Below are positions 3,268 through 53,833 of a stretch of DNA of 64,000 nt, piece after piece (the first letter of the stretch is position 1; each line of letters starts with the position of its first letter). Under the pieces are notes generated by a model, which made no database searches, was not told where the DNA came from, and saw only the letters and a program-made list of their open reading frames with translations. The stretch lies in the IMG/VR virus record IMGVR_UViG_3300047558_000137, positions 62,001-126,000 of that record; one strand, given 5' to 3'. The position numbers and the translations under genes are program-made.

Positions 3268-4352
3268 TTCCGTTTTTTGGTATTAAGCGACAGTACCAAA
3301 ATCTACGCGAAGAATTACTACATATTACTGACCAAGTATATAGTAGTGGTAAAGTATTAGACGGGGAATACACCCAGCGGTTTGAGCAGTTAATTGCTAC
3401 CCGCTGTAATAGACGCTTTGCAATCGCGGTAAATTCGTGTACGCAAGGGCTTTTATTCGCGCTACAAACGCTTTATCCGCCGGGGTTGGTACTCATACCT
3501 ACCCTGAGCTTTGCAGCCACGTTAAACACGGTTTTATTAACCGAGCATGTACCCGCTTTTGTGGACGTGGATTACCAGGGTCTAATGGATCTAAATAATG
3601 TAAACTTTAGTTTAAATGATCGGAATATTGCCGCTGTTATGTATGTTAACTTATTCGGTAATACTTTGGACTACGATAAGTTTAGGGTAATGACTGAGTT
3701 TTGGGGACAGAAGCCACGCATCATCGAAGATGCTGCTCAGAGTTTCGGCGCACGATATAAGGGCATACCGTCGGGAAAGATGGGAGATGTCAGTGTACTA
3801 AGTTTTGATCCAACTAAGAATCTACCCAACTATGGATCAGGCGGAATGATCCTAACCGACGATTATCACTTGGCCGAGAACTTTCTTGATCTACGTGACA
3901 ACGGTAAACATGGTATACACGAAGCACCGGGTACTAACAGCAAGATGAGTGAAAGTGACTGTGCTCAGTTAACAGTCAAGTTACAATATTTTGATGAGTG
4001 GCAAGATCGTCGTGATGCTATTGCTCGATATTACACTCAACAATTACATCCTTACGTTGATGTATTAGGTCCCGGAGAGGATGTAGAACATGCCTGGCAT
4101 AAGTTTGTCATTCGTGTGCAGAACGATAGATACAAACTACAGAGCCATCTAAGCCTTAAAGGCGTAGAAACTAAGATACACTATGCCCAACCATTGGACA
4201 CATTATCAGTTGGTGTTGCCTATGCACAACACGGTGTTTGTATTAACTCTGCTGAGTTTAGTCGAGAGACACTTAGCTTGCCTATATACCCTGAATTAAC
4301 AGATAGCGAAGTTGAATACATCGCGCAATCTGTTAAAGAGTTTTATCATTAA
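3249..4352 (+). CDS. DegT/DnrJ/EryC1/StrS PLP-dependent sugar aminotransferase
   Basis: AVNSCTQGL, IIEDAAQSFG, SFDPTKNL (PLP Lys), GGMILT, LSLPIYP. Confidence 0.92.
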   Translation: MGTKAIIPFFGIKRQYQNLREELLHITDQVYSSGKVLDGEYTQRFEQLIATRCNRRFAIAVNSCTQGLLFALQTLYPPGLVLIPTLSFAATLNTVLLTEHVPAFVDVDYQGLMDLNNVNFSLNDRNIAAVMYVNLFGNTLDYDKFRVMTEFWGQKPRIIEDAAQSFGARYKGIPSGKMGDVSVLSFDPTKNLPNYGSGGMILTDDYHLAENFLDLRDNGKHGIHEAPGTNSKMSESDCAQLTVKLQYFDEWQDRRDAIARYYTQQLHPYVDVLGPGEDVEHAWHKFVIRVQNDRYKLQSHLSLKGVETKIHYAQPLDTLSVGVAYAQHGVCINSAEFSRETLSLPIYPELTDSEVEYIAQSVKEFYH

Positions 4353-4797
4353 GCTCGTAGGCCCTTGGATTAGTTAAGTAGAAATCAGTTTCGCCGGGAC
4401 CTTTTTTGGTATGCAAGTTCCAGTCCGGTAGTAAACGCTTTACCATTCTGGCATACAAACTTGTGCGAGAATCCCCTTCGGAACTAAATCGTATTTCTAA
4501 AACTTTGTTGCCATACTGTTTTAAAAACTCTCTAGTAATATCAACAGCGGATGCTATAACAGTATTGGAATTTCCAGTACCAGTCATTCCAAATGTTTTG
4601 TCCCAACCCTCTTGATCTCGTTGTTGAAATGCAATAGTCCAAACAGTTGGATCACGATGATTCATTACTCTAGCAGACCACAGATACTCAATATCGCCTG
4701 CTTTAAAACTAGCAAATGCTTCTTCGCTACCACGAAATTCCCATGCCCATTGTTTTCCAGGTTGAAATAGTTCAGTGATAAAATCTGTTGCTCGCAT
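4333..4797 (-). CDS. Hypothetical protein with N-terminal capsid-targeting-like peptide (MRATDFITE)
   Basis: 154-aa ORF; N-terminus nearly identical to that of 41509..42144; TAAATA box 4 nt upstream of the ATG. Confidence 0.7.
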   Translation of the reverse strand: MRATDFITELFQPGKQWAWEFRGSEEAFASFKAGDIEYLWSARVMNHRDPTVWTIAFQQRDQEGWDKTFGMTGTGNSNTVIASAVDITREFLKQYGNKVLEIRFSSEGDSRTSLYARMVKRLLPDWNLHTKKGPGETDFYLTNPRAYELNDKTL

Positions 4798-10221: not shown

Positions 10222-10818
10222 TTATTTGTGTGATTTGTTTAAGAAAGGCAGCATGCCTGTTGTAGTGCTGAAGTGTTTCAGATAAAGTTCTTCAAGACTT
10301 TTGTGAATAGTGTTTTTAACTGTTATAGTTTTACCTGCTACAGTTGTAGTGAATGTATCAATAGGGCAGGCACGTGCCCAGATAGTAATTTCGTTGCCAG
10401 CATCAATACTCTCTCTGAGACTTTCTCTGATGTTGTAATCAGTGCCGTCGCCCTTTCGTAGTCGGCCGAGCCGGCAGACAGAAGAGCCCTTGGGTTGCCA
10501 TTCGGCATGGTATCTTTGAGATTCTCTAATACCAAGTGGGTTACCTGTTTCACCTAGTTTGAGAATTACATCATTTTCGACTACAACATAAATCCAACTC
10601 TTATGATCTGCATACATCAAATTCGTATTGATGTTGTAGTAAACCCACCCGCTATAGTTGTCTAATTTTACATCACAGACTTTTTCAAATCCATCCTCGA
10701 TGAATTTGTTAATATCAAATCCTTTGAATCCACGTGGAATTTTGTGACGGGAAGTTGCACCTTGTGCTGTGGTGCTAGTGTCTTCTGATTCAGAAGAGCT
10801 TTCGGCATCTAATAACAT
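10222..10818 (-). CDS. Putative GIY-YIG-like nuclease
   Basis: SWIYVVVENDVILKLGET...R and a C-terminal E..YL..F...G.LP.LN segment resemble GIY-YIG domains. Confidence 0.5.
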   Translation of the reverse strand: MLLDAESSSESEDTSTTAQGATSRHKIPRGFKGFDINKFIEDGFEKVCDVKLDNYSGWVYYNINTNLMYADHKSWIYVVVENDVILKLGETGNPLGIRESQRYHAEWQPKGSSVCRLGRLRKGDGTDYNIRESLRESIDAGNEITIWARACPIDTFTTTVAGKTITVKNTIHKSLEELYLKHFSTTTGMLPFLNKSHK

Positions 10819-10916
10819 AATATATTCTCCTACGGGTTATAACAGCGTACCATACGCTACCAGCCGATGCACTAAAATAAGTACCATACTAACGTGTGCA
10901 TCAACTAAGTGTTATT

Positions 10917-10946
10917 ATTATATTTAAAAGCTATGAGCTAAATCAA
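10917..10946 (-). promoter_or_regulatory. Sigma70-type promoter for the GIY-YIG/DGQHR/HNH cassette
   Basis: Minus strand TTGATT-N18-TATAAT. Confidence 0.6.
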
Positions 10947-11009
10947 ATTAATAGGTAAACTTAATTGGGCTAAAAGCACCTAAAAAGTAAATATGCGTAT
11001 ATAACGAGA

Positions 11010-11015
11010 TAAATA
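11010..11015 (+). promoter_or_regulatory. T4-like late promoter box TAAATA
   Basis: GATAAATA upstream of AAGGA-N6-ATG of 11038; a second TAAATA at 10988-10993. Confidence 0.5.
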
Positions 11016-11037
11016 ATAGTAGATCAAGGAAACTGTT

Positions 11038-11325
11038 ATGTCAAGACCAAAACCAACTGTACTGTTGGATCACGTTAATAAGAATACCTATAAGAGCCAG
11101 CAAATTCTGAATTCAGAAGGAATCTGGGCAGTCTTCTATGATAATATGCCTATCAATATGAAGAGCTTCAATATATTAACTTCATACCCAGGTCCAAAAT
11201 ATGGCAAAGTTAGTTTTAGCAATCCAGGTCATGCAATTAACTTGGCCAAGAAATTAAATACTCTATTCAAGAGCGATAAATTTACTGTAGTCTTGTTAAA
11301 GCAAGGTGATCAAATCTACCCCTAA
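11038..11325 (+). CDS. Hypothetical phage protein
   Basis: 95-aa ORF with SD (AAGGA) and late box. Confidence 0.75.
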   Translation: MSRPKPTVLLDHVNKNTYKSQQILNSEGIWAVFYDNMPINMKSFNILTSYPGPKYGKVSFSNPGHAINLAKKLNTLFKSDKFTVVLLKQGDQIYP

Positions 11326-40846: not shown

Positions 40847-41512
40847 TCATTTTTTCTTTGCGCGACCAGATTTCATGTTAGCCATCCAGTGTGCCAATTG
40901 GCCTCTTCGGCCACCTTGTTTGGCTATTTTGCGTAGACTTGATATGCTGCCTTTTGTTGGAACATTGTAACGCTTGCTGTCACCTTTATCTTCAGGATGG
41001 CGGCCATCGTGGAAGTTTTCTTTAAGATGTTCTTCGTCACGAGCCAATACAGCCTGCCCAATTCGCTCACATAACTGATTTAGTTTGGCATTATCGGTTT
41101 CGACTAGTTTGAACTTGTGTTGCCCATTATCTTGACTAGGATCCATATATCCACAGTAGACATAGTCAATCCCTAAATCTTCTAGTAGATCTGTGCAACT
41201 TTCATTGTAACGTAATTCCATACGTTGGTCACTACAAGGACTTAGCGTTGTAACTATAATGGATCCAGCGGGCAAGTCACCGTATTCTTTATTATAAGCA
41301 TCAATAGCTGTGCGTTCAGCATGGCACCAAAGTTCTGGATTGTCACTAACTAATGTGCCCAATCTTAGAACTCGTTGACCGTTAGGATCAACTACTGCGG
41401 CACCAACCCAACTGTGTTTTTCGTTGTCGTTGTCAACAATCATTTCGCAAAGGTCAACTAATACTTGATCTAAATCATTTTCTGCTGATTGAGTAAATTC
41501 GCTTAGTCTCAT
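40847..41512 (-). CDS. Zn-dependent deaminase-fold protein with capsid-targeting-like N-terminus and basic C-terminal module
   Basis: HAE...PC..C motif; MRLSEFTQSAE N-terminus; basic module after HLKE. Confidence 0.7.
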   Translation of the reverse strand: MRLSEFTQSAENDLDQVLVDLCEMIVDNDNEKHSWVGAAVVDPNGQRVLRLGTLVSDNPELWCHAERTAIDAYNKEYGDLPAGSIIVTTLSPCSDQRMELRYNESCTDLLEDLGIDYVYCGYMDPSQDNGQHKFKLVETDNAKLNQLCERIGQAVLARDEEHLKENFHDGRHPEDKGDSKRYNVPTKGSISSLRKIAKQGGRRGQLAHWMANMKSGRAKKK

Positions 41513-42144
41513 AGTATGTTCTTATAGTCTAGAAAATTGGCGTGACGATCTTGCAGTCCGCGCAAGGCAGGATTAATAAACTTAGTTACCAATGCAGTAT
41601 CGGCAAAGTTTTTAACGTTTGGTTTTACACGGGTGTTCCAGTACCATACTGCAATCTTTGCAGCCACATCGGGTCTGGCAGCTAGTTCTGGTTGTTGCTC
41701 TAATGGCAAACCTAACGCACGTCCGGCCATTTGATAATTAGCACGACCTGTAATTTGTATATAACCGCGACCATGATAACGTGCGCCATCACCGGGATGT
41801 GTGTTACCTAATATCCGAGCTTTGTCTGGAGAGTGCCGTGGATCGTATCTACGTGTGAAATACTGTGCGCCGCCAATTTCTTTCATACGACTAAAGTCGG
41901 CCGACTCGTGTTTAGTTTGTGCTAGAAATTGTGCTAACTCTACCCCACGTAGCCCATACTTCATTGCAGTCTTTTGTAATAGTATTTCTTTATCGGGATT
42001 ATTACTTAGAACATTGTATGAAGTTGGTGCCTTCATTCCCAAACCAGCTTGTGCAGCACCTGTTGCAGCCATGGCACCGGCACCTGCTAATCCACGCAGG
42101 AAACCTCTACGGTCCATTTCTGTAACAAATTCTGTTGCTCTCAT
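41509..42144 (-). CDS. GH19 lysozyme/chitinase-like hydrolase with CTS-like peptide followed by a Tat-like signal
   Basis: FLAQTKHESA, YHGRGYIQITGRANY, A.W(Y/F)W, T.(F)INP; N-terminus MRATEFVTE-MDRRGFL...AAQA. Confidence 0.85.
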   Translation of the reverse strand: MRATEFVTEMDRRGFLRGLAGAGAMAATGAAQAGLGMKAPTSYNVLSNNPDKEILLQKTAMKYGLRGVELAQFLAQTKHESADFSRMKEIGGAQYFTRRYDPRHSPDKARILGNTHPGDGARYHGRGYIQITGRANYQMAGRALGLPLEQQPELAARPDVAAKIAVWYWNTRVKPNVKNFADTALVTKFINPALRGLQDRHANFLDYKNIL

Positions 42145-42824
42145 TGCTTTAGGTGTTCGGGATTAGTTTGATTATAGTTACGCATGATAACGCCAGCTTC
42201 GGCGTTGGCTTCGTTTTCTTCTGGTGTACCTGTACCGCCTGCACCTGCTTCTAACCGGCCTTCACTATCTTGTTTGTAGTGTACAAGCTCGTGTGCAAGT
42301 GTACGCATGACATCCACAGGATGACGAGTGCCGACAACTAGCTTAATAGTTTTTTCATTTGGATTATATGTACCAAATGTAGTATCTTCAGGTTGATCTA
42401 AAAATACAATTTTAGGCAAATCCTGTAGTCCAAGCTCTTTGGCAACCCAAGGAATAAACTTCTTAACTAGTTCAACAGAAGATTGGTCTTCTGCATCCTC
42501 GCCTACATGCTTGAAGTATTGTACTTGACGTTCTCTTTTTTCTGCACCAGCATGACTAGGATATGTGCCCAAATTCTTGCCAGTGTGGCTTACTAGACGA
42601 TATCCGCCTTTTACTTTGCGAATGGTCTCGGCGATTTCTTGTAACTTTCTAACTGTTTGTGGTGTACAGACAATCTGTTTAATTTCAAAACTACTGTTAG
42701 GAAATTTAGTTTTAATGTTATTGTAGTCTAATAGAACCTCGGCCTCATCAGATGACTTGCTGATAGGCTGTCCGTCTTTATATAAGACGTACTCGGATTC
42801 GTTTAGAAAGTCTCTAGCTCTCAT
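42141..42824 (-). CDS. Modular virion-cargo-like protein with a zincin (HExxH) domain
   Basis: MRARDFLNE N-terminus; LAHELVHYKQ...ENEANA. Confidence 0.7.
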   Translation of the reverse strand: MRARDFLNESEYVLYKDGQPISKSSDEAEVLLDYNNIKTKFPNSSFEIKQIVCTPQTVRKLQEIAETIRKVKGGYRLVSHTGKNLGTYPSHAGAEKRERQVQYFKHVGEDAEDQSSVELVKKFIPWVAKELGLQDLPKIVFLDQPEDTTFGTYNPNEKTIKLVVGTRHPVDVMRTLAHELVHYKQDSEGRLEAGAGGTGTPEENEANAEAGVIMRNYNQTNPEHLKQ

Positions 42825-43255
42825 TTTAGGCTTGCACGTAGCATCCAGCTATGCTTTTCGTGTGCATCCATGCGTTCTGCTAGGAAGTTGCTGAAGCCAT
42901 GCTTACCGTGGATCTCTGCAATGTCGTAAGTCATCTTAAGAATAGTAACCATGTTGCGGCTGTCTTCTAACAATTCAGCAATCATCTGCTCAGGCGGCAA
43001 TACATCAGTCTCATCTTCGATACGACTTAACATGTTAAAACGACTGTTACTACCAGGAGCATACGCACCTAGAGCACGAATCTTTTCTGCAAAGTCGTCA
43101 ACGCTTCCGTAGACTTCTTCGTATATTGTACCAAACAAATCGTGTAGTTCTTTGAAGTTAATACCTTCTACGTTCCAGTGAAAGAACTGTGCTTTCAAAT
43201 AAAATGTAAACTCGCTAGCAAATGCTACTTTGGCTGCTTTATGTAATTCTTCCAT
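42821..43255 (-). CDS. dps: Dps-family ferritin-like protein
   Basis: FHWNVEG..F..LH.LF...YE.....DDFAEKIRALG, HEKHSWML. Confidence 0.9.
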   Translation of the reverse strand: MEELHKAAKVAFASEFTFYLKAQFFHWNVEGINFKELHDLFGTIYEEVYGSVDDFAEKIRALGAYAPGSNSRFNMLSRIEDETDVLPPEQMIAELLEDSRNMVTILKMTYDIAEIHGKHGFSNFLAERMDAHEKHSWMLRASLK

Positions 43256-45681
43256 TATTTCTTACCTTTGCGGATTGACTCTGCAATCATCATTAATTCG
43301 TTAAAATCTTCTACGCTTTCGCAATTCCATTTACGAAGTGCTAGCGCCTTACGTGTAGGCTCACCATTTGGTTTCTTCATTGGACCATCTACACCTGACA
43401 TACGGGCACAGAAACTTTTACGGCGTTTAGCATCCTTGCTACCTGGCTTTAGTTTGCTAGGTTTAGTAGTAACTGCTGTTTGCAGTTTGCTACCAGGATG
43501 TTCGCGGCGATAACTATCAACGCCCTTTTGGTTTAGGCCGCCGTTTTTGTTTTTGCCCGACTTCTTTTGCCATGCTGCACTTTCGCCATATTGTTGACGA
43601 TAGTGCTTTAACATACTCATAGCAGTTTCTTTACTCATGCCAGTTTTAATAGTCACACCATTAGCACTTAACAATTCATATACTTCGTATGTTCTACCAT
43701 CCGGGGCTGTTCTAGTTACTTTACGGATCAGAGGCTTACCTGTTGCTTCTGCCACACCTTCTCTTCCATAATGAAAGATAGATTCTAATTCATCTACTAG
43801 TTTATGGTAGTGAGTTGTGCCATCTAGTCTTTCTGGATTAGCGATAACTCCAGTTGCGTAAACCATTGCTCTAAAGAACTCTGGGCTTGCATCTACTTCG
43901 GCTTTTACTGATGGATTGGTTTTATAAACCTGAATCATCTTTCTTGCAGCACGACGGTATTTGTTATCAATACCTTGTTCTTCGCCTTCCTCCACGCCTT
44001 GCTTTAACTTTTTAATGGTCCAAGAACCATCGTTGTTCATATAGTAAAGTTCTTTTTTATGTTCACTGGCACTCCCATTCGGCGAAAGGCTACCCGACAT
44101 TTCTTCCATATATTCTGGACTATAAACATTAGGGTCGCAAATTACTACGTGATCAGCATAATAGATTTTGTTGCCTTTTATAGTTGGCTCTGATGTTAAG
44201 CCTTCCGCCACACCTTGGTCTTTATTAAATCCAAAATTACCAAACTGACGATAGAACTTTATTGCGTCATTGAAATATGCGTTAAATTCTGGTGTACCTT
44301 TTTTATACCCAATCTTTGTTAATTCTTGTTCAATATGTCGAACCAATGGCATCTCTGCTTTTAGTAGTTCTGGAGCACCTTCAGACATACCACCTGCTAA
44401 TTCTTCTTCGCTCCAGCCAATATAACTATCGCCGTCTTCGTCGCCGATACGCATAACAAACGCACCGCCTTCTTCGCTTTCAAGTTCGCCGATTTCCCAC
44501 CCAACTTTAGCTAGTGCTTGCTCTACTCGTTGTTGTGTAGCAACGTCGGGTGCAGAAAACCACATTTTGGCAAGATGGAACAGCGCATCTTCTGGACCAT
44601 CACCATTGTCATCGCCTGCTGCATATTCGTTAAGACCTTCTTGGTCAGCAACAGCTTGTAGTTCTTTTGCAATTCTAGCCAAATTCTTAGGACTCAGTTC
44701 GGCAATCATGCTGTCCAAGTCGCCCTCGTACTGATCCCAGAACTGTGCAAACAATGGCGCACTAGTATTCAAATACTCTAGTGCATCGTCGCCTTGATCA
44801 TATATTGATTGATACAATTGACGAATAGTATCACCCAGACCTTGGCTTTCTGCCATAGGTGCTGCACCGCCTGCACCTAATGTTGCACCAGCTGGTAAGT
44901 GCCATGCATCTGCAGGCTCATTACCTGTACCGTGCCAATCATCTTCATTTATGTCTGCATCAAAATAGTTTTGTGCATAGGCACGAACTTCGTCATCATT
45001 GTAGAATGGTCCTGCAACTTGATATCCGCGACTGTAGTCTTTCTGGATATGTTTCATAATATCGTTTGGAGTTAAGTAACTCATAAAGTTACCTCCCCAA
45101 TTGTAAGGTGGGTTACCGGATACAGTAGTTTCTTTCCAACGGCCACCATCCTGTGTCAATGCACCAATGAATACTCCTTCGTCTTCACTGGCAACTATAA
45201 CGTAGAAACCATCTACATATTCATCAGACTCTTCATCTTGATCATAGTCATTTTGGCTAACATCGCTAGAGTGGAAACTTACAAGACCGTGGTTATATAA
45301 ATTAACAACAACAAAACGCTTGTCTTGTCCAAAGTCTGTAATAACACCAGTCGCACCTTTATACTGTACATCGCCAGTAACAATGACGTCGTCGCCGATG
45401 TTTAGCTCTTCAGCATTTTCCGCCATGGCTTTCTGGTAAGCAATTTCGGTGTTATTGGCCATTTGTTGCTTGAAGTTGTCAACTGCACCGCCTGGGTCAA
45501 TTGATCCTGGAGTGGTAGGTATTGGAGCACCTTCTTTGACTTTTTTAACTTTAACGCAACTATCTGTACCATTCTTAGTACCGTTATAACGATACCCGTC
45601 CCAGCAAGCCTTGCCGTCTGCACCTTTAATTTTCTTGGATTCTTTTATCGGCTTTGGCCCAATGATGTCATCTAGAAACAT
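43255..45681 (-). CDS. Polyprotein-like multidomain protein (808 aa)
   Basis: Modules separated by Phi-X-E motifs (IKE, VKE, MAE, INE, LNE, MSE, VAE); basic C-terminal module ending ...RKWNC. Confidence 0.7.
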   Translation of the reverse strand: MFLDDIIGPKPIKESKKIKGADGKACWDGYRYNGTKNGTDSCVKVKKVKEGAPIPTTPGSIDPGGAVDNFKQQMANNTEIAYQKAMAENAEELNIGDDVIVTGDVQYKGATGVITDFGQDKRFVVVNLYNHGLVSFHSSDVSQNDYDQDEESDEYVDGFYVIVASEDEGVFIGALTQDGGRWKETTVSGNPPYNWGGNFMSYLTPNDIMKHIQKDYSRGYQVAGPFYNDDEVRAYAQNYFDADINEDDWHGTGNEPADAWHLPAGATLGAGGAAPMAESQGLGDTIRQLYQSIYDQGDDALEYLNTSAPLFAQFWDQYEGDLDSMIAELSPKNLARIAKELQAVADQEGLNEYAAGDDNGDGPEDALFHLAKMWFSAPDVATQQRVEQALAKVGWEIGELESEEGGAFVMRIGDEDGDSYIGWSEEELAGGMSEGAPELLKAEMPLVRHIEQELTKIGYKKGTPEFNAYFNDAIKFYRQFGNFGFNKDQGVAEGLTSEPTIKGNKIYYADHVVICDPNVYSPEYMEEMSGSLSPNGSASEHKKELYYMNNDGSWTIKKLKQGVEEGEEQGIDNKYRRAARKMIQVYKTNPSVKAEVDASPEFFRAMVYATGVIANPERLDGTTHYHKLVDELESIFHYGREGVAEATGKPLIRKVTRTAPDGRTYEVYELLSANGVTIKTGMSKETAMSMLKHYRQQYGESAAWQKKSGKNKNGGLNQKGVDSYRREHPGSKLQTAVTTKPSKLKPGSKDAKRRKSFCARMSGVDGPMKKPNGEPTRKALALRKWNCESVEDFNELMMIAESIRKGKK

Positions 45682-45682
45682 T

Positions 45683-47617
45683 TTATTTCATTCCTTGCTG
45701 TTTAGATACCTGTTGCAATATGCTAGCAACTTGTCCACCTTTTTGTGGATCTGCTAGTGCATCACCAACTAGATCAGCTAGGGCCTTTGTTTGTTTTACA
45801 TCAGTTGATGCCATTGGCTTGCTTGGATCTGTTGCAATACCTTGTATTGCGTGTGATGCTTGTGCAACGTTAATACTCTTATCGGCACCTGCAATCTTAT
45901 TTAAGTTTGCTTTTTGAGCTTGTGCAGCTTGTGGGTCCGGTTGTTGTGGTTGTCCTGGTTGTTGTGCGGCAGGATTAGCAGTACCGCCTGTAGTCATGCC
46001 GTACTCTTTAATCTTACGTGGGGTTTTGCCTTCTGGGTGCTTGCGAATAATAACGCCAGCTTGTCCCATTTTCTGCAATGGTAATACATCATAGCTGCCA
46101 CCTAGAACTTGTTCTACATAACCAATTAGTTCTTTAGTAGTAAAGCCCTTTTGATATGTGCCTGCACTGGTAATAACACTCATTGGCTCTGGACCTGGCT
46201 TACCATTCTTAAGAGCACTTAATACATCTTTGCCACGAGTAGTAATCAACGCAACACCACCTGGTGCTAAAATACGACCAATGTTCTGTACGATCTCTTG
46301 ACGTAGTTTAGGTGGAACAACGTTCAATACGTTAAAGTTAGTTACACGATGGTAAGCATTATCTGGAATAGCTGTAAAGTCTGTGTATGTTGGCTTTACA
46401 TCTTTCTTTGGATATGGCTCATAGCTATCAGCACCCAATTCAGCAGCACCTAGGCCTAGGCCTGATCCAATATCAATGGTTTTGCCTGTTGGACTATGTG
46501 TGTCTAAGTGTGCGCGAGCTTTTTTGTATGTTGGTAGTGTACCGGGAATCTGTGTACGCTGTGCATTTTCTGGTGGAGGTAATTCTTCATCATCCTCATC
46601 AATGCTCTTACTTTGTTCTTGATACAAGGCGTGTAACTCAGCTGGTTCGATTTCGAAACTAACGCTTGCTTGTAATAGTGCTTCTTTATATGATGCACCT
46701 GCATTGTGAATAAGATCCTGCATCAATGCTACAGCTTCTCTAGAATCTAATGCTTCTGGACTAGTAATATTGCCCATCATGACGTCAAACTTTTCATCGC
46801 CAGTGGATTCTTTAACTAATTCGTGACCACCTTCCATGATAGCAAGTTCTTTATCAGTAAATTGCTTGCTAGATTCTCTAACTGGTGGCATCCATTTCTT
46901 AGCCTTGGCGCCTAGCTTTTGTTCTAAGTTGGCAACAGTTTTGTCTACTAGTTCCTGACTAGCACCTGCCTGTGGCTTATAGAACCATGCACCATTACGC
47001 GATTGGCGTAGACCTAACTGTTGTAGTTGTTGATCTGTAAAACTACCAGCAATGTTTCTTAAATTAAAGAAATACATGCTCTTATCAGCTTCTGCTGTGC
47101 CCTGTGGAATATAAGCATCGCCCACAGGATTAACAGTACCATTTGGCCATTTAACGCCAATGGTCATATTAGGATACTTAGACTTAATAGCACCAGCATG
47201 ACGGAACGCATCGTTGCTATTAGTATGTTGTTTCATATCAATCCACTGTGCGCCCTGTTTTTTAACAACACGGAAGTCGCCTTGTGGATCTTCTTCGCCG
47301 GTGACATCTGGACCACGACGACTAAATGGTTTAGCATGGAAGTTATGATCGTAACCTTCATCAAACTTTGCAAACTCTTGCTTTAGTCTGCGCTCAACGC
47401 TGCCTTCAACTACTTGCTTATCTAAGTCACGAAGAATACTTTCGGCTGCACCTACTAACCGTCCAGCAAATGGGTGTTCGCCCGACTTTTTTGCTTTGGC
47501 TTTTTCGGTACCACGTACTTGGTCGCCAGCCTTCTGGCCTTTCTTTTCTCCTGCAAAAGAGAATTTGGTACCCTCATGGATACCATCCAAAATGGATAGT
47601 GATTTTTTAATGTCCAT
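45683..47617 (-). CDS. Polyprotein-like multidomain protein containing a class I methyltransferase domain (644 aa)
   Basis: IDIGSGLG...NVLNVV...ILAPGG; Phi-X-E linkers (IHE, VVE, VRE, IME, VKE, IDE, IKE). Confidence 0.7.
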   Translation of the reverse strand: MDIKKSLSILDGIHEGTKFSFAGEKKGQKAGDQVRGTEKAKAKKSGEHPFAGRLVGAAESILRDLDKQVVEGSVERRLKQEFAKFDEGYDHNFHAKPFSRRGPDVTGEEDPQGDFRVVKKQGAQWIDMKQHTNSNDAFRHAGAIKSKYPNMTIGVKWPNGTVNPVGDAYIPQGTAEADKSMYFFNLRNIAGSFTDQQLQQLGLRQSRNGAWFYKPQAGASQELVDKTVANLEQKLGAKAKKWMPPVRESSKQFTDKELAIMEGGHELVKESTGDEKFDVMMGNITSPEALDSREAVALMQDLIHNAGASYKEALLQASVSFEIEPAELHALYQEQSKSIDEDDEELPPPENAQRTQIPGTLPTYKKARAHLDTHSPTGKTIDIGSGLGLGAAELGADSYEPYPKKDVKPTYTDFTAIPDNAYHRVTNFNVLNVVPPKLRQEIVQNIGRILAPGGVALITTRGKDVLSALKNGKPGPEPMSVITSAGTYQKGFTTKELIGYVEQVLGGSYDVLPLQKMGQAGVIIRKHPEGKTPRKIKEYGMTTGGTANPAAQQPGQPQQPDPQAAQAQKANLNKIAGADKSINVAQASHAIQGIATDPSKPMASTDVKQTKALADLVGDALADPQKGGQVASILQQVSKQQGMK

Positions 47618-48216
47618 TAGTAGGCACCTTTAACTTTAACTAACTTAGGCTTGGTAGCAATATTTGTATATCCACCTAGCTTCTTATTAACCTGCTTGCG
47701 GGTCATGCCCTCTTCGCCTAATTCTTTAACTACTGCACTAACAGAACTAGAGCAACTTGCACCACCTGTAGCATCTTCTCTAATTTTTAAATTCTTAGTA
47801 AGATCAGCTGCATCGCCACCAAAGAATCCCTTAAATGCATCTCTGTACTGTTGTTGTCTTTGTTGCTTTTCTTGTTGTCTTTTAGTTGGCTGTGCTGCTG
47901 GCTTCTTTTGCTTAGGCTCTGAACCTAACATTTCAGACATCTGCGCTTCTGCGTCTGCTGGATTAAATCCTGGGATTTCTTCTTGCTTGCCCATTTCGTG
48001 CTGACTAATCATATAGTCCATAACACTAACAATCATGCCTTTAACTTGGGCAATCTTTTCTTGGCACCACTCTGGCAAGTTTTCGTTATCGCCGATGGCA
48101 CGTTCTAGGTGTGTGGATACGCGAATAATAGTATGCAGGTTGTTTTTAAACATGCCCGCTTCGTCATCATATTCAGCATCTTCTGTGTAAGAGTTAATAA
48201 AATCTGTAGTTTTCAT
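47617..48216 (-). CDS. Hypothetical protein with CTS-like N-terminus
   Basis: MKTTDFINSYTE; first gene after the late box at 48238-48243. Confidence 0.7.
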   Translation of the reverse strand: MKTTDFINSYTEDAEYDDEAGMFKNNLHTIIRVSTHLERAIGDNENLPEWCQEKIAQVKGMIVSVMDYMISQHEMGKQEEIPGFNPADAEAQMSEMLGSEPKQKKPAAQPTKRQQEKQQRQQQYRDAFKGFFGGDAADLTKNLKIREDATGGASCSSSVSAVVKELGEEGMTRKQVNKKLGGYTNIATKPKLVKVKGAY

Positions 48217-48237
48217 AGGGAATTCCGGCCTTTTGTA

Positions 48238-48243
48238 TATTTA
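48238..48243 (-). promoter_or_regulatory. T4-like late promoter box TAAATA for the cargo operon
   Basis: GCTAAATAT 21 nt upstream of the ATG at 48216. Confidence 0.55.
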
Positions 48244-48246
48244 GCA

Positions 48247-48543
48247 CTATACGTAAAAGGTGAATTCTTGAAATTCCTGTGAACTACTGTCGGGCAATAA
48301 TCTACCATCAACTGTTACGTTTTTAAATGATATATTATTGTTAGGGGCACAATTATAAATTTTTACTTGATGAGCGCCGTGTTCTACTTCTACTTCTATG
48401 TGCTCTTTAATGTATGTTTCGTAGCTAGGCCATGCCCAGGTACGTTCGGTTAGCAAATCATCGTCTACGTAGACACGATATACAGGACTGCAATCCCAAT
48501 CTTTGTGGCAATACACATCAATTGTGAGAGCAGCGTGTGCCAT
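48247..48543 (-). CDS. Hypothetical beta-rich protein
   Basis: 98 aa; resembles 49328..49774 (W...P.Y.(V/I).V.....). Confidence 0.6.
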   Translation of the reverse strand: MAHAALTIDVYCHKDWDCSPVYRVYVDDDLLTERTWAWPSYETYIKEHIEVEVEHGAHQVKIYNCAPNNNISFKNVTVDGRLLPDSSSQEFQEFTFYV

Positions 48544-49289
48544 TATTTTAACCCCGCGGCCTGTATTGTTTTGGGCAGTTTAGGATATCTAGTAGATACC
48601 ACTTCTTCCTGTTCTGCCATGGGGATTTTGTCCATAATGCGCCCTAGTTCAGCGTCATTGCGTCCAAACATCTGCATTAAGAATGTTGATCTTAATTCAG
48701 GATTGTTTCTAATCTGATTCCAAGTGTTGCGTACATCTGTGCCGTGACTTACATCAACTGCATCTTCTTCAAGATTAACTTCAGCCTCTTGCTCGGGAAC
48801 AATAATAACATACCCATGTTGATCTGCTGTTACTGCATTATCAGGGCCTTCCCAGGTTTGATAGTAAGTAGGGTCGCCTACACTTTTGCCAGCTGGCAAT
48901 GTGTTTCTTTGTCCGTTTTTCTTAAACTCTTGATATGTACCATCTACATTTAACCGTGCAGCATCGGGCGCACCTACTGCGGTAATAAACACAGTGCGGT
49001 TCTTTTGTGCCTCAAATTGTTTGGGGAATGTGTATAGGCTGCTAGCCTGTATGATACGGTCTTGTGCCACGCCCTGCGCTGTCATGAATTTAACTCTATC
49101 ACTAAAGTTAAATGGACTGTCGTCTTTAACGATACCCGATGTAACTACGTAAACATTATCACGGCCAAATCGGCCCTGTAACTTCTCGTAAACTGCACGG
49201 TGATTAAGACCAAAGGGCTGAAAACGCCCTGGGTATGTTACAACCAAGTTAACCGGGTCTAGGGATTCAAGTAATTCGTTTATAAACAT
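48543..49289 (-). CDS. HIGH-type nucleotidyltransferase-like protein
   Basis: VVTYPGRFQPFGLNH, SPFNFSDR, GTDVR; late box at 49310-49315. Confidence 0.6.
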   Translation of the reverse strand: MFINELLESLDPVNLVVTYPGRFQPFGLNHRAVYEKLQGRFGRDNVYVVTSGIVKDDSPFNFSDRVKFMTAQGVAQDRIIQASSLYTFPKQFEAQKNRTVFITAVGAPDAARLNVDGTYQEFKKNGQRNTLPAGKSVGDPTYYQTWEGPDNAVTADQHGYVIIVPEQEAEVNLEEDAVDVSHGTDVRNTWNQIRNNPELRSTFLMQMFGRNDAELGRIMDKIPMAEQEEVVSTRYPKLPKTIQAAGLK

Positions 49290-49327: not shown

Positions 49328-49774
49328 TTAGATGTTTTCCAAAAGCCAGATATAAAACGGGCTAGTGAATTTAATGGACCAGGTGCCATTCCAGCCTAGG
49401 TCAATACAGTTATCCAATGCAGGATATTGGCTATCATCTGGTGTGTAAGTTGATTTTGTATGAATCATATTACCCAAATTGACTTCGTCAATTTCTACAC
49501 TACGGATATTTAACAACATATCTTTTACAATAGCTGTTTTATCTTCGTTTTGTATAGTATCTTGCCAATCTTTATTTTCTAAGCGAATACCTAGTTCAGC
49601 AGGCCCTTCATCTAGTTCATGATCGAACTCTATCACAAAAGAATTGCCGCTTGGCTCATCTACTGCGCCTTGTTTTACAGTTTGACCATTAACTAGAATA
49701 GAATAAGCGGGACGCTTATCCCAATACGTGCCCGCTAATTCGATTTTAAAATGTAATGTTTCTTTATCAGACAT
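49328..49774 (-). CDS. Hypothetical protein
   Basis: 148-aa ORF ending PFYIWLLENI. Confidence 0.7.
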   Translation of the reverse strand: MSDKETLHFKIELAGTYWDKRPAYSILVNGQTVKQGAVDEPSGNSFVIEFDHELDEGPAELGIRLENKDWQDTIQNEDKTAIVKDMLLNIRSVEIDEVNLGNMIHTKSTYTPDDSQYPALDNCIDLGWNGTWSIKFTSPFYIWLLENI

Positions 49775-50856: not shown

Positions 50857-51579
50857 TTATTTATGTGGCATTACAACCAGCTCATGACAATTTGATATCA
50901 AATCCGGGGACATTAAACGAACCATAGTATTAATACCTTCGTCGTTGCTGTAAAAATAGCAATTCCAAATATAAGAACTACCTTTTGACAGCATATCTAA
51001 TGTGCCTTTTGGAACATGGACTAGATCTGGCCCTAAATTAGAAAGATACAGATAAAGACTCTCTTTTACATGGGCAGAGAATGTGCCATCTTTAATGATA
51101 ACTTTATAACGATACCCGAGATCATTCTTTCGAATAATAGCGCCAGAGTTTAATATAGCTTCTGCTTCGTCATCTTCGGGCCCATATACAGACTCAACAT
51201 GGGTTTTATATGTGGGTATATATGTTTCAACAATATTACGCATATCATCGTCGGTTTGTGCATATACCTGTATGCGCGGTTCTTCGACTCGCATCTTTAT
51301 TCCGGGGATATTGGCCTGTTTGAGATTGCGTAGTTGTTCCAATAAAACAACATCGGCAGAATTTACATTAGACTGTCGAATATGGCGATACCACCAAGAT
51401 CCGCCAGGGTTGTAATTCTTACGGAATTCTATTTCTTGGGCGATATCGCCATTGCTTAAAATCAATCTACCAGCAGGAGCATACAATACCATTTTATATA
51501 GGTACTTGCCATAGTATTTTTTGGCTGTATGTCCTACTGTTATTTTAGGATTGGACTGAATCCAATACGATATATCCAT
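50857..51579 (-). CDS. Hypothetical protein
   Basis: 240-aa ORF overlapping the clpA stop. Confidence 0.7.
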   Translation of the reverse strand: MDISYWIQSNPKITVGHTAKKYYGKYLYKMVLYAPAGRLILSNGDIAQEIEFRKNYNPGGSWWYRHIRQSNVNSADVVLLEQLRNLKQANIPGIKMRVEEPRIQVYAQTDDDMRNIVETYIPTYKTHVESVYGPEDDEAEAILNSGAIIRKNDLGYRYKVIIKDGTFSAHVKESLYLYLSNLGPDLVHVPKGTLDMLSKGSSYIWNCYFYSNDEGINTMVRLMSPDLISNCHELVVMPHK

Positions 51580-53833
51580 TATTATCTACCATAGGAGTGC
51601 TCGGAGCATACGATCCCTGCGGAGTAAAGATGAATCCATCGTTAATGTAATCAACTTCAATCAATGTATATGCAGGAATGTTCTCGAACAATATCTTCTT
51701 ACTTAGCGGGACCTTAATAAGATCGCTAATTTTACGTGCAAGGGGTCGTGCGCCAAGTTTAGGATCATATCCTACCTTGCTCAATTGATCCACAGCCGCT
51801 TCAGTTAACCGAATCTTAACAGATTTCTCTGACAACAGTTCGTTAACTTCGTTAATAAATTTGCTAACAATCTTCTTGATGCTAATTTCATCAAGTTTGT
51901 TAAATTTACAGATGCCATCTAAACGGTTACGGAATTCAGGTTTAAAGAATTCTTTAACTGCTCGGTCATCTTCTCCAGTTTTTTGCAAATCACGGCCAAA
52001 GCCAATGTTATTGCGTTCATTATCTGCCGCACCTAAGTTACTTGTTAGAATAACAATAGCATTACGGGCATCGGCCTTTTTACCATTGGAACTAGTAATA
52101 GTGCCTTCATCCATAAGTGCCAGCATAATATTCATAATATCTGGATGTGCTTTTTCAACTTCATCAAGAAGAATAATACAGTTAGGATTCTTCTCAATAT
52201 CGCTAATAAGCAGGCCGCCGCCTAAGTTACCATCATCGAAGCCAACGTAACCGGGGGGAGCACCAATCAGTTTCGCAACTGAGTGCTTCTCTTGGTATTC
52301 ACTCATATCGTAGCGTAGTAGTTTCATCCCGAGATTCTCGGCTAGCAACTTTGCTAACTCAGTTTTACCTGTACCAGTGGGGCCCAGAAACAAGAAGTTA
52401 CCAATAGGTTTGTTCATTGCTTTTAGACCGGCACGAGCCACGTAAATCTTTTCCAGCACAGTACCAACAACTTGGTCCTGGCCATATAGTTTGTTCTTAA
52501 TATTTGATTCAAGATCAACAAGAGAGTTGGTATTATCACTGCCAATTTGGTCAACTGGAATCTTAGTAAACTTACTAATAATATCCACAATGTGACTCTT
52601 ACGGCAAGTCCAGCTAATAGCATTGATCTTTAGCTTTGCACAGGCTGTATCAACAAGATCAATAGCTTTGTCAGGCAACTTCTTGTCTGTTTGATAGCGT
52701 ACACTTAGATCAACTGCGGCATCTAATGCCTCATCGCTAATACTACCGCCATGAAATTCTTCAAAGTAACCACGTAGTCCACGCAAAATCTCTTTTGCTA
52801 CCTGTGGAGTAGGCTCTTCTACAGTCATACGATAGAAACGGCGCATCAACGCACGATCCTTTTCAAACGATTGGCTGTATTCTTCCCAAGTGGTTGATGC
52901 TACTACCTTAATATTGCCTTTAGTTAGTGCAGGCTTAATCATGTTAGCAAAGTCAACACTGCTATTGCTACCAGTGCCGGCGCCACGCATCTGATGTGCT
53001 TCATCAATAAACAAGATGCACTTGCCTTTGCTGTTTAACGCACCAATAACATCTTTAAACTTCTCTTCAAACTCGCCGCGGTACTTAGATCCAGCAAGCA
53101 AACTGCCAATGTCTAGGTTATAGACTGTATAGTCTTGTAGGTAATTAGGTACTGCACCATTAACAATGTTACGTGCCAGTCCTTCTGCAATAGCAGTCTT
53201 ACCAACTCCGGGGTCGCCTACTAACAATACGTTAGATTTGTTACGCTTAGCCAATACTTGTGCAATCTCATCAAGTTCGAACTCGCGACCAACAACTGGA
53301 TCAATTTGATTGTCCTTGGCTTTGGCGTTAAGGTTGTCGCAATATTCTTTAAGAATCTCTTCTGCGCGGGCACTGTTTGCATTGCCGCGGCGCTGTTTGC
53401 TCTCTACATAGTTCTTATTGTAGTAATCAACAAACTGTGTGCGTTCTAGACCGTACTTGATAAAAAAGTAACTGGCGTGACTATTTGTTTCGCTTGTGAT
53501 GCTTAGAAAAATGTCAATAACTTGTAAGTGACTGCGACCACTAAACAATACTTGTGTAAATGCACGGTTAAACACACGCTCTAGGCTGTGAGTTTTCTTA
53601 GCAACATGATCTGGATCTCGACTAACAATAGCAGTTTGTGCATCTAGGTAGTCTTCAATGTCTTTGATCATGGCATCTGCATCTGCCCCATATGCTACAG
53701 TTAGATCATAAAACGGCTTATAGGTCATAAGACCGTGTGTTAGATGCTCTAACGTCACGTATTCGTGATTGTATTTCTTTGCCAGATCAACTGCACTGGC
53801 AATAATAGTTTCAATTTCGGGGTTTTGATTCAT
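51545..53833 (-). CDS. clpA: ClpA-like two-AAA-domain unfoldase
   Basis: HEYVTLEHL N-domain, GDPGVGKT, FIDEAH, GPTGTGKT, LLDEVEKAH, IGF ClpP-docking loop, GARPL. Confidence 0.92.
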   Translation of the reverse strand: MNQNPEIETIIASAVDLAKKYNHEYVTLEHLTHGLMTYKPFYDLTVAYGADADAMIKDIEDYLDAQTAIVSRDPDHVAKKTHSLERVFNRAFTQVLFSGRSHLQVIDIFLSITSETNSHASYFFIKYGLERTQFVDYYNKNYVESKQRRGNANSARAEEILKEYCDNLNAKAKDNQIDPVVGREFELDEIAQVLAKRNKSNVLLVGDPGVGKTAIAEGLARNIVNGAVPNYLQDYTVYNLDIGSLLAGSKYRGEFEEKFKDVIGALNSKGKCILFIDEAHQMRGAGTGSNSSVDFANMIKPALTKGNIKVVASTTWEEYSQSFEKDRALMRRFYRMTVEEPTPQVAKEILRGLRGYFEEFHGGSISDEALDAAVDLSVRYQTDKKLPDKAIDLVDTACAKLKINAISWTCRKSHIVDIISKFTKIPVDQIGSDNTNSLVDLESNIKNKLYGQDQVVGTVLEKIYVARAGLKAMNKPIGNFLFLGPTGTGKTELAKLLAENLGMKLLRYDMSEYQEKHSVAKLIGAPPGYVGFDDGNLGGGLLISDIEKNPNCIILLDEVEKAHPDIMNIMLALMDEGTITSSNGKKADARNAIVILTSNLGAADNERNNIGFGRDLQKTGEDDRAVKEFFKPEFRNRLDGICKFNKLDEISIKKIVSKFINEVNELLSEKSVKIRLTEAAVDQLSKVGYDPKLGARPLARKISDLIKVPLSKKILFENIPAYTLIEVDYINDGFIFTPQGSYAPSTPMVDNNGYIVLDSVQS

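Follow-up and report, generated by a model that had tools for sequence, protein, structure and literature searches.

Candidate capsid-targeted polyproteins with exchangeable modules and hydrophobic-x-Glu joints in a T4-related marine jumbo phage

Two chains of modules and their junctions

The stretch of DNA analysed here (hereafter the window) comprises 64,000 nucleotides, i.e. bases 62001-126000 of the IMG/VR virus record IMGVR_UViG_3300047558_000137 (hereafter G000; 374,314 bp, estimated complete), and the phage behind this record is, by its sequence, a T4-related marine jumbo phage. Our subject is a pair of adjacent minus-strand open reading frames (ORFs), A and B, for which an original prediction, made from the DNA letters alone, had proposed that they encode cassette polyproteins processed inside the head by a prohead protease at hydrophobic-x-Glu motifs (hereafter Phi-x-E; in the motifs below an arrow marks the joint behind the P1 glutamate). 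Both ORFs are present, A at 43255-45681 (808 amino acids, aa) and B at 45683-47617 (644 aa), and all 17 tetrapeptides named in that prediction occur in their products, once each: in A at residues 11, 47, 85, 243, 275, 349, 431, 490, 562 and 642, and in B at residues 12, 68, 245, 259, 267, 338 and 535. The features of the two ORFs are the following (names of the type P0003 denote members of the protein family described further below; CTS, capsid-targeting sequence; MCP, major capsid protein; SAM, S-adenosylmethionine):

43255-45681, minus strand: ORF A (808 aa), a leader and about 11 modules with Phi-x-E junctions between them and DUF6321 at the C-terminus
45640-45681, minus strand: leader of A, residues 1-14 (MFLDDIIGPKPIKE↓S), CTS-like, conserved in P0002, P0003 and P0113
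45529-45543, minus strand: junction KVKE↓G (A47-51), which opens a 38-aa module without counterpart in the orthologues
45415-45429, minus strand: junction AMAE↓N (A85-89), which closes the 38-aa insert and resembles the predicted MCP maturation site MLAE↓N
44845-44859, minus strand: junction PMAE↓S (A275-279), which opens module 279-352, missing in P0003
44623-44637, minus strand: junction GLNE↓Y (A349-353), which opens the most widely shared module, 353-434
44377-44391, minus strand: junction GMSE↓G (A431-435), seen in a BLAST coverage step, in AlphaFold and in the anchored boundary list
44200-44214, minus strand: junction GVAE↓G (A490-494), seen in a BLAST coverage step and in AlphaFold
43984-43998, minus strand: junction GVEE↓G (A562-566), seen in a BLAST coverage step and in AlphaFold
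43744-43758, minus strand: junction GVAE↓A (A642-646), a boundary of replacement in orthologues, seen also in a BLAST coverage step and in AlphaFold
43258-43581, minus strand: DUF6321 module (A701-808, net charge +17), preceded by QYGE↓S and standing directly behind a leader in P0105
45683-47617, minus strand: ORF B (644 aa), a helical leader, basic N-terminal modules, a class I methyltransferase-like core and a low-complexity tail rich in Q, A and P
47573-47617, minus strand: leader of B, residues 1-15 (MDIKKSLSILDGIHE↓G), a second leader type, common to P0042, P0016 and P0004
46805-46819, minus strand: junction LVKE↓S (B267-271), at which the orthologue P0123 carries a 57-aa insert
46028-46582, minus strand: class I SAM methyltransferase-like core (B346-530), between SIDE↓D and KIKE↓Y

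Pfam assigned nothing to A and B beyond DUF6321 in A (PF19846, residues 709-785, 76.5 bits against a gathering cut-off of 28.5, E 2.5e-21) and a sub-threshold match to Methyltransf_23 in B (21.2 bits, below the cut-off of 27). The methyltransferase module that had been proposed for B is borne out by this weak match together with the predicted structure: B346-530 forms a confident Rossmann domain (predicted local distance difference test, pLDDT, 85-95), and Foldseek matched it to METTL6 and other class I SAM methyltransferases (E 1e-7 to 1e-5). The sequence of B also shows a glycine-rich DIGSGLGLG. The short basic peptides that had been proposed alongside it hold only in part, given that A15-50, A646-700, A701-808 and B16-71 are basic, whereas most modules are acidic (isoelectric point, pI, about 4.1-5).

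The count of motifs is close to chance, as [ILVM]-x-E occurs 16 times in A (12.4 ± 3.2 in shuffled sequences) and 7 times in B (7.6 ± 2.4), and the 17 named sites had been chosen by eye among these 23 motifs (10 of the 16 in A). The narrower G-[ILVM]-x-E-[GAS], a motif defined post hoc, is found in A 4 times against 0.3 expected. Since the number of motifs is at chance, the case rests on the position of the sites and not on their count. One further junction, QYGE↓S at A700, directly before DUF6321, had been missed.

Gain, loss and exchange of modules at the junctions

Searching A and B against 5.8 billion proteins yielded about 200 relatives, many of which are encoded on marine contigs of 200-440 kb. 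Only two full-length orthologues were found per query; the other relatives have one or two modules in common with the query (45-90% identity over 6-40% of its length) and bring additional domains of their own (methyltransferase, nucleotidyltransferase, deaminase, zeta toxin, HD and GNAT). BLAST coverage along A changes in steps at residues ~17, 32, 48, 84-98, 151-160, 241-247, 276, 348-352, 430-437, 493-498, 560-566, 645-650 and 700, i.e. approximately at the sites of the original prediction and, at 700, at QYGE↓S. The module at A353-434 stands in many relatives directly behind an N-terminal leader (MRINDILVE↓FAP..).

Comparison with the orthologues revealed that modules are gained, lost or exchanged exactly at Phi-x-E junctions, in A, in B and in their operon neighbours, in line with the earlier suggestion that the junctions let modules be swapped. 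The 38-residue module of A between KVKE↓ and AMAE↓ is absent from both orthologues; P0003 is devoid of the module bounded by PMAE↓ and GLNE↓, P0002 has an additional one (GLAE↓ to TLNE↓), and the segments delimited by ..DE↓G, GVAE↓G, GVxE↓G and GVAE↓A give way in the orthologues to unrelated sequence. P0123, the orthologue of B, has 57 residues inserted from ELTE↓ to GVAE↓, at the place of LVKE↓S in B. Among the neighbours, the zincin-like protein reads MRAKEFDE↓TIRK.. at the syntenic locus L006 and here MRARDFLNE↓ followed by 58 residues that end in EIAE↓TIRK.., and the L006 orthologue of the 199-aa operon protein has ~80 residues more, ending in FGEAE↓E. Across orthologue pairs the P1 Glu is invariant and P3 hydrophobic, with P2 and P1' free to vary (GMSE↓G becomes GLDE↓G, and QVVE↓G becomes QVDE↓G). 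Judged by these sequences, A and B are chains of separable modules with a real modular grammar.

Within G000, the genes that share modules with the family are only six genes of the operon and a gene for a 518-aa protein (321917-323473; locus L012) that matches a 'virion structural protein' PHROG (E 8e-16). The N-terminal domain of this 518-aa protein is found elsewhere fused to modules of ORF A (P0040, P0062, P0104, P0108 and P0109).

The placement of the motif at breakpoints of homology was quantified on filtered high-scoring segment pairs (HSPs) with residue controls and on anchored boundary lists, which replaced residue profiles over all BLAST HSP ends, as these were too noisy. In an all-against-all BLAST of 198 proteins (HSPs of at least 50 residues and at least 40% identity, with ends internal in both partners), 27.9% of right HSP ends had the P1 of a Phi-x-E at -3 to +2 (random positions, 10.2%), and 40.7% of left HSP ends had it at -3 to +6 (random positions, 16.9%). 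At the breakpoints [ILVM]-x-E was 2.4-2.7-fold enriched, and the controls (Phi-x-D, K, Q, S, A, N, G and T) were all depleted (0.5-0.9-fold). The anchored test set out from a conserved residue inside the methyltransferase core, with 52 distinct downstream contexts: within 16 residues downstream of the core, [ILVMF]-x-E was present in 83% of the 52 contexts, as compared to 21% of random stretches. At this boundary the P1 Glu is fixed; V, M, I, L or F stands at P3, nine residues are seen at P2, and G, A, D, T or S prevails at P1', with unrelated sequence behind the joint from one context to the next. A fixed Glu accompanied by variable P2 and P3 argues for selection on a peptide motif over a DNA joint.

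Predicted structure places the sites in a similar light. As MAFFT scattered single-module fragments along the long queries, the alignments given to AlphaFold were limited to well-placed rows, and residues 350-650 of A are shallowly covered. The model of A (mean pLDDT 63.7) has confident domains at 156-245, 279-350, 445-480, 650-700 and DUF6321; eight of the 10 sites fall in segments of pLDDT <50, as does the leader, and the other two, DINE246 and GLNE352, are at the margins of domains. The seven sites of B (mean pLDDT 62.5) are all within or adjacent to low-confidence segments. The predicted sites are therefore found outside the confidently folded domains and not within them, the placement that the original prediction had named as its refutation, and the Phi-x-E motifs that had been left unlisted at A326, A629, A667 and A799 sit inside helices or strands. 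Foldseek of A against the PDB returned no significant match; the ESM Atlas gave scores <0.7 for A153-250 and A350-495 (LPD and IpIV matches <0.6), which we treat as leads only.

A leader shared by the operon genes

A and B belong to a run of nine minus-strand genes (40847-49289), seven of which (A, B and five neighbours) carry a leader at the N-terminus, which the original prediction had overlooked. The five neighbours begin with MRLSEFTQSAE, MRATEFVTE, MRARDFLNE, MKTTDFINSYTE and MFINELLES, and A begins with MFLDDIIG..; B has a second type of leader, 15 residues long and helical. Throughout the family the leaders measure 8-15 residues, and the N-terminal logo reads M-[KNRF]-[IL]-x-[DE]-[LIF]-[LF]-x-E in spite of the differing modules behind it. 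With a position-specific scoring matrix (PSSM) trained on the relatives (A and B left out), the leader of A scored 7.9, above the 99.9th percentile of a null of internal methionines, and 18 of the 542 ORFs of G000 passed the cut-off (5.4 expected). Five of these 18 lie in the operon and two adjoin the gene of the prohead protease; B (4.1) and the GH19 muralytic enzyme of the operon fall just below the cut-off.

The end of the leader is itself a junction. MKIKNIISE↓DLPPPEN and MFTSELFD↓DIPPPEN at N-termini correspond to GVAE↓DMPPPEN and ELAE↓DLPPPEN within chains, and three further leaders have their counterparts in A: MRSKDFINE↓TAAWQKK (YGE↓SAAWQKK in A), MRVHDFFEN↓KIKGADGKACW (IKES↓KKIKGADGKACW in A) and MRINDILVE↓FAPSGD (GLNE↓YAAGDD in A). 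That is, one module stands behind the leader in some proteins and behind an internal junction in others (including P0105 and P0023).

The T4 propeptides, taken from the record of T4, read MKTYQEFIAE↓A (IPII, IPIII), MKTFKEFTS...ITE↓A (IPI), MELITE↓LFDE (Alt) and MAKINELLRE↓S (gp24). Such propeptides are known to target their proteins and to be processed (PMC9026906, PMC5694885), Alt being cut at ITE-6 (PMC5694885). Applied to T4 with a one-residue offset chosen post hoc, the family PSSM placed 6 of the 10 known gp21 substrates (gp24, Alt, gp21 and IPI-III) within the top 13 of 66 coding sequences (P = 0.0026).

Strong CTS-like leaders occur at scattered places as well (window 4333-4797, minus strand; G000 253703-254155, 326013-326408, 186478-186921, 189880-191148 and 304493-304987). 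These leaders are MRATDFITE, MRINEIILEN, MKITDIIITEN, MRITEITSP, MRYKEFNKLYE (with a Pfam GP88 domain) and MRLFEFTQSFD, and by them the genes are candidates for further head-targeted proteins.

Internal export signals

In five relatives a twin-arginine translocation (TAT) motif, RRGFLKG(L/A)GAAA.., lies far inside the chain (residues 748 of 1305, 550 of 1074, 123 of 733, 207 of 478 and 132 of 734; Pfam TAT_signal E 3e-5 to 3.5e-4), each time 2-7 residues past a junction. The GH19 enzyme of the window reads MRATEFVTE↓MDRRGFLRG. As TAT signals act only near the N-terminus, their internal position is hard to explain without a cut at the preceding joint.

Prohead protease and head genes

G000 has a Peptidase_S77 gene (PF03420, E 6.5e-26), whose product is a gp21-type prohead protease, 38% identical to T4 gp21, with the catalytic motifs GELDHP (His) and GVSSRG (Ser) kept and a match to PDB 5JBL. 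The gene stands in T4 order, with small core proteins on one side and a coiled-coil scaffold on the other, after which comes a gp23-type MCP. In the alignment of this MCP with T4 gp23, the T4 maturation site FLTE↓AEIGG stands opposite KMLAE↓NASGG, and the propeptide upstream of MLAE↓N also holds ALLE↓S, ALLE↓G and VILE↓N. The position of gp67 and gp68 beside the protease is occupied by two genes, one for a 77-aa protein (MFVTELFDP.., a leader that fits the family logo; L001 3170-3403, minus strand, = G000 367518-367751) and one for a very acidic low-complexity protein of 351 aa (L001 2017-3072, minus strand, = G000 366365-367420).

The domains of A and B are found near head genes in other phages. 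The methyltransferase core is part of CRP-3 gp36, which has 1292 aa and a cell-wall hydrolase at its N-terminus and whose gene directly follows the portal gene, and of Myrna gp97, which adjoins the major head protein; in MJing1 it adjoins a putative portal gene. In pelagiphage HTVC031P, DUF6321 is encoded between the genes for scaffold and capsid, and in P-TIM68 next to TerL. Furthermore, in G001, a 259-kb relative, a stand-alone leader-bearing methyltransferase (MKIQELFES..) is encoded ~2-3 kb downstream of the block of MCP, scaffold and protease. The same region of G001 (L031, G001 116000-134000) has an HNH-type endonuclease-like gene (10505-11284, minus strand) inserted directly downstream of the MCP gene, and a sigma-factor-like gene of 170 aa between this HNH-type gene and that of the leader-bearing methyltransferase.

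Leader and joint grammar was seen in the S77-bearing records G000, G001 and G002. Around the methyltransferase core of CRP-3, MJing1 and G003-G005, which have no S77, no such grammar was found, and Myrna, likewise S77-negative, has a single upstream match (KIAE↓Y). A megablast of the window's region against cultured phages gave no match, and tblastn matches to cultured phages were confined to the DUF6321 tail and the methyltransferase core.

Neighbouring genes

The other genes of the operon and its immediate surroundings are the following:

40847-41512, minus strand: cytidine/dCMP deaminase-like protein, 221 aa, with leader MRLSEFTQSAE and a basic C-terminal tail
41509-42144, minus strand: GH19 (chitinase class I / endolysin-type) muralytic enzyme, 211 aa, with leader MRATEFVTE↓, then a Pfam TAT signal
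42141-42824, minus strand: HExxH zincin-like protein, 227 aa, with leader MRARDFLNE↓, then a 58-aa module ending in EIAE↓
42821-43255, minus strand: Dps/ferritin-like protein, 144 aa (Pfam Ferritin E 1.9e-22), without leader, in the same operon of overlapping genes
47617-48216, minus strand: operon protein of 199 aa with leader MKTTDFINSYTE
48543-49289, minus strand: cytidylyltransferase-like protein, 248 aa, with leader MFINELLE↓S (compare T4 gp24, MAKINELLRE↓S)
48247-48543 and 49328-49774, minus strand: two small ORFs of 98 aa and 148 aa, neither with a leader, set among the leader genes

Most genes of the nine-gene run overlap or abut the next within 1-4 nucleotides, with a single gap of ~30 nucleotides after the 98-aa ORF, and the operon is flanked by a family-B DNA polymerase on one side and a ClpB-like AAA+ gene on the other. 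The zincin-like protein has an HELVH motif and weak Pfam matches to DUF6647 and DUF6782. The GH19 enzyme, with its leader and TAT signal, could serve as an endolysin exported by TAT or as a muralytic enzyme that is injected and directed to the periplasm. The Dps/ferritin-like DNA-binding protein is also conserved at the syntenic locus L006, as are the 98-aa and 148-aa ORFs, which resemble each other in their beta-rich sequence style. The ClpB-like AAA+ protein (phrog_4871 'ATP-dependent protease') is encoded just upstream of the operon (window 51545-53833, minus strand); at L006 (575-3718) the ClpB-like gene adjoins a DnaJ gene, the two forming a phage chaperone/disaggregase pair.

Interpretation and alternatives

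From the modular grammar, the exact insertions and deletions at junctions, the leader, the protease gene and the predicted disorder at the sites, we infer packaging, cleavage and delivery of the modules of A and B. On balance we lean, with modest confidence, towards considering A and B capsid-targeted polyproteins, which would enter the prohead by means of their leaders, be cut at leader and joints by the gp21-type protease, and release their modules. The leader, similar to the capsid-targeting propeptides of T4 Alt, gp24 and IPI-III, would bring the protein into the prohead core, where the gp21-type serine protease, cutting after Glu in Phi-x-E, would remove the leader and cut the exposed junctions. 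The freed modules, of which there are many besides the class I methyltransferase-like enzyme and the very basic DUF6321, would stay with the DNA or exit the head, and those retained would enter the host upon infection. With one and the same short joint at the end of every module, cassettes could be added, lost or exchanged without breaking the system. The cassette polyproteins of the original prediction are thus recovered as regards separable modules, exact exchange at junctions and a gp21-type protease gene, and not as regards an enrichment of motifs or the DNA-condensing peptides, for which few basic modules are available. A wider proposal, to which we give somewhat less credence than to its negation, is that in a clade of abundant marine jumbo T4-like phages leader and cleavable joint constitute a general grammar, by which any module bounded by Phi-x-Glu behind a CTS-like leader may be loaded, freed and injected, some of them to be exported by TAT to the host periplasm. 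Such a grammar would furnish a plug-and-play library of delivered effectors, and it would represent the first prohead-protease-processed effector polyprotein system in phages.

Several points weigh against capsid targeting and cleavage. The family proteins, collected by their homology to A and B, are not independent samples, and low pLDDT may partly stem from shallow alignments and not from disorder. The family leader is one residue shorter than the T4 propeptides, and the T4 cross-check allowed for an offset of one residue chosen post hoc. The co-occurrence with S77 is drawn from a small number of records, of which some are fragments. Most modules are strongly acidic, opposite to the basic internal proteins (IPs) of T4. 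The T4 late-promoter octamer TATAAATA was found 0 times in the 64-kb window (6.9 expected) and 13 times in the 374 kb of G000; the late transcription signals of this phage probably differ from those of T4. Moreover, the operon lies ~250 kb from the head genes of G000, among replication genes. The ip and alt genes of T4 are likewise scattered away from the head module, and we therefore consider this distance weak counter-evidence.

The alternative that survives best, although we regard it as rather unlikely, holds that A and B are uncleaved multidomain polyvalent proteins, active as intact enzymes, be it in the particle or in the cytoplasm, in which the Phi-x-E-G joints are flexible linkers doubling as microhomology for recombination. 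Three junctions of A are near-identical in DNA (GGT GTG GCG GAA GGC, GGC GTG GAG GAA GGC and GGT GTG GCA GAA GCA), module shuffling is abundant, the motif count is at chance, and some polyvalent proteins are packaged uncut, e.g. the virion RNA polymerase of N4 (PMC5512222). A recombination joint, however, is not needed at the end of an N-terminal leader, where the same motif is found, and the fixed P1 Glu beside a varying P3 (V, L, M or I) and P2 (A, T, D, N, S or E) points to selection at the level of the peptide. Furthermore, internal TAT signals would be useless without cleavage, and Phi-x-D and the other controls are depleted at the breakpoints.

We consider it improbable that the polyproteins are cut elsewhere than in the head, either by the zincin of the operon or by an enzyme of the host, with modules that act in the cytoplasm or periplasm of the infected cell and are not injected. 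Processing of polyvalent proteins by metallopeptidases has been proposed by Iyer et al. (PMC5512222), a zincin-like gene lies three genes downstream in the same operon, and this operon stands among replication genes with no late promoter found. Cleavage after Glu with a hydrophobic P3, on the other hand, is documented for gp21-type proteases (PMC5694885) and not for known zincins. The zincin itself looks like a substrate, given its own leader and an insert delimited by junctions; the leaders are similar to the propeptides that target T4 proteins to the capsid, and homologous domains occur in head modules elsewhere. Lastly, that Phi-x-E is simply common in Glu-rich proteins and that boundary-like instances were picked is hardly credible, since the motif counts at shuffle expectation and the six further motifs of A left unlisted, which would fit such a view, are contradicted by the exact orthologue indels, the Glu-specific enrichment at breakpoints, the 83% versus 21% of the anchored test and the enriched, clustered leader.

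Should capsid-targeted polyproteins prove to be the correct reading, the T4 principle of capsid targeting and processing, known for a few small proteins, would extend to combinatorial delivery in uncultured jumbo phages of the ocean. It would explain how large arsenals of injected proteins are assembled and reshuffled, and leader and joints would supply a sequence rule to predict virion-delivered effectors from metagenomes, making dozens of small modules candidate factors of host takeover or counter-defence. The internal TAT signals hint at an onward route to the periplasm for proteins delivered by phages, and the grammar could guide the packaging of multiple cargoes in T4-type phage vectors.

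Comparison with known systems

We found no description of a leader and joint grammar in the literature. Packaging and injection have been predicted for polyvalent proteins, found in phages and conjugative elements (Iyer, Burroughs, Anand, de Souza, Aravind 2017, PMC5512222), and proteolytic release of their domains has been proposed. Such proteins are similar to A and B in joining many unrelated domains in one phage polypeptide (2-15) with extensive shuffling, and the methyltransferase-like core of B occurs in the head-module giants CRP-3 gp36 and Myrna gp97. They differ in that processing is ascribed to an embedded metallopeptidase, with no joint grammar or CTS-like leader described (PMC5512222), and in that their genes adjoin portal or MuF. 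The G000 operon lies between DNA polymerase and the ClpB-like gene, but the homologous methyltransferase core does have head genes nearby in CRP-3, Myrna, MJing1 and G001. The joints of A and B fit a Glu-specific prohead protease. None of the polyvalent hub domains (MPTase, MuF, ART, SNF2/DarB-type methylase, LPDs) was detected in A and B by Pfam, and the zincin is encoded by a gene of its own.

The ejection and inner-body proteins of phiKZ, 201phi2-1 and SPN3US likewise belong to jumbo myoviruses and are cut after Glu, sometimes at several sites, by a gp21-related protease. The cuts made by the proteases gp175 and gp245 follow (S/A/G)-x-E with a small P3, in contrast to V, L, M or I here, and the proteins that are cut have propeptides of more than 100 residues and form paralogue families, as compared to leaders of 8-15 residues and cassette mosaics. 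The prohead core proteins gp22, gp67 and gp68 of T4 are also cut at many Phi-x-E sites, and the scaffold and the 77-aa gene of G000 show the same motifs; the T4 proteins, however, are discarded assembly scaffolds and not strings of folded enzyme or binding modules.

The closest likeness is offered by T4 IPI, IPII, IPIII, Alt and gp24, which have a short propeptide (about 6-19 residues in this class) ending in hydrophobic-x-Glu, comparable to the types MRATEFVTE↓, MFINELLE↓S and MIFTDLFE↓S found here. As in G000, a gp21 homologue is encoded in the genome, the genes of the internal proteins are scattered, and hypervariable payloads follow a conserved leader. Alt, moreover, is a large payload (682 aa) with a second cut, at LTE-619. 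IPI-III differ in being small, basic and single-domain, as opposed to the 808 and 644 aa of A and B, with their ~11 and ~7 modules of mostly pI 4.1-5.

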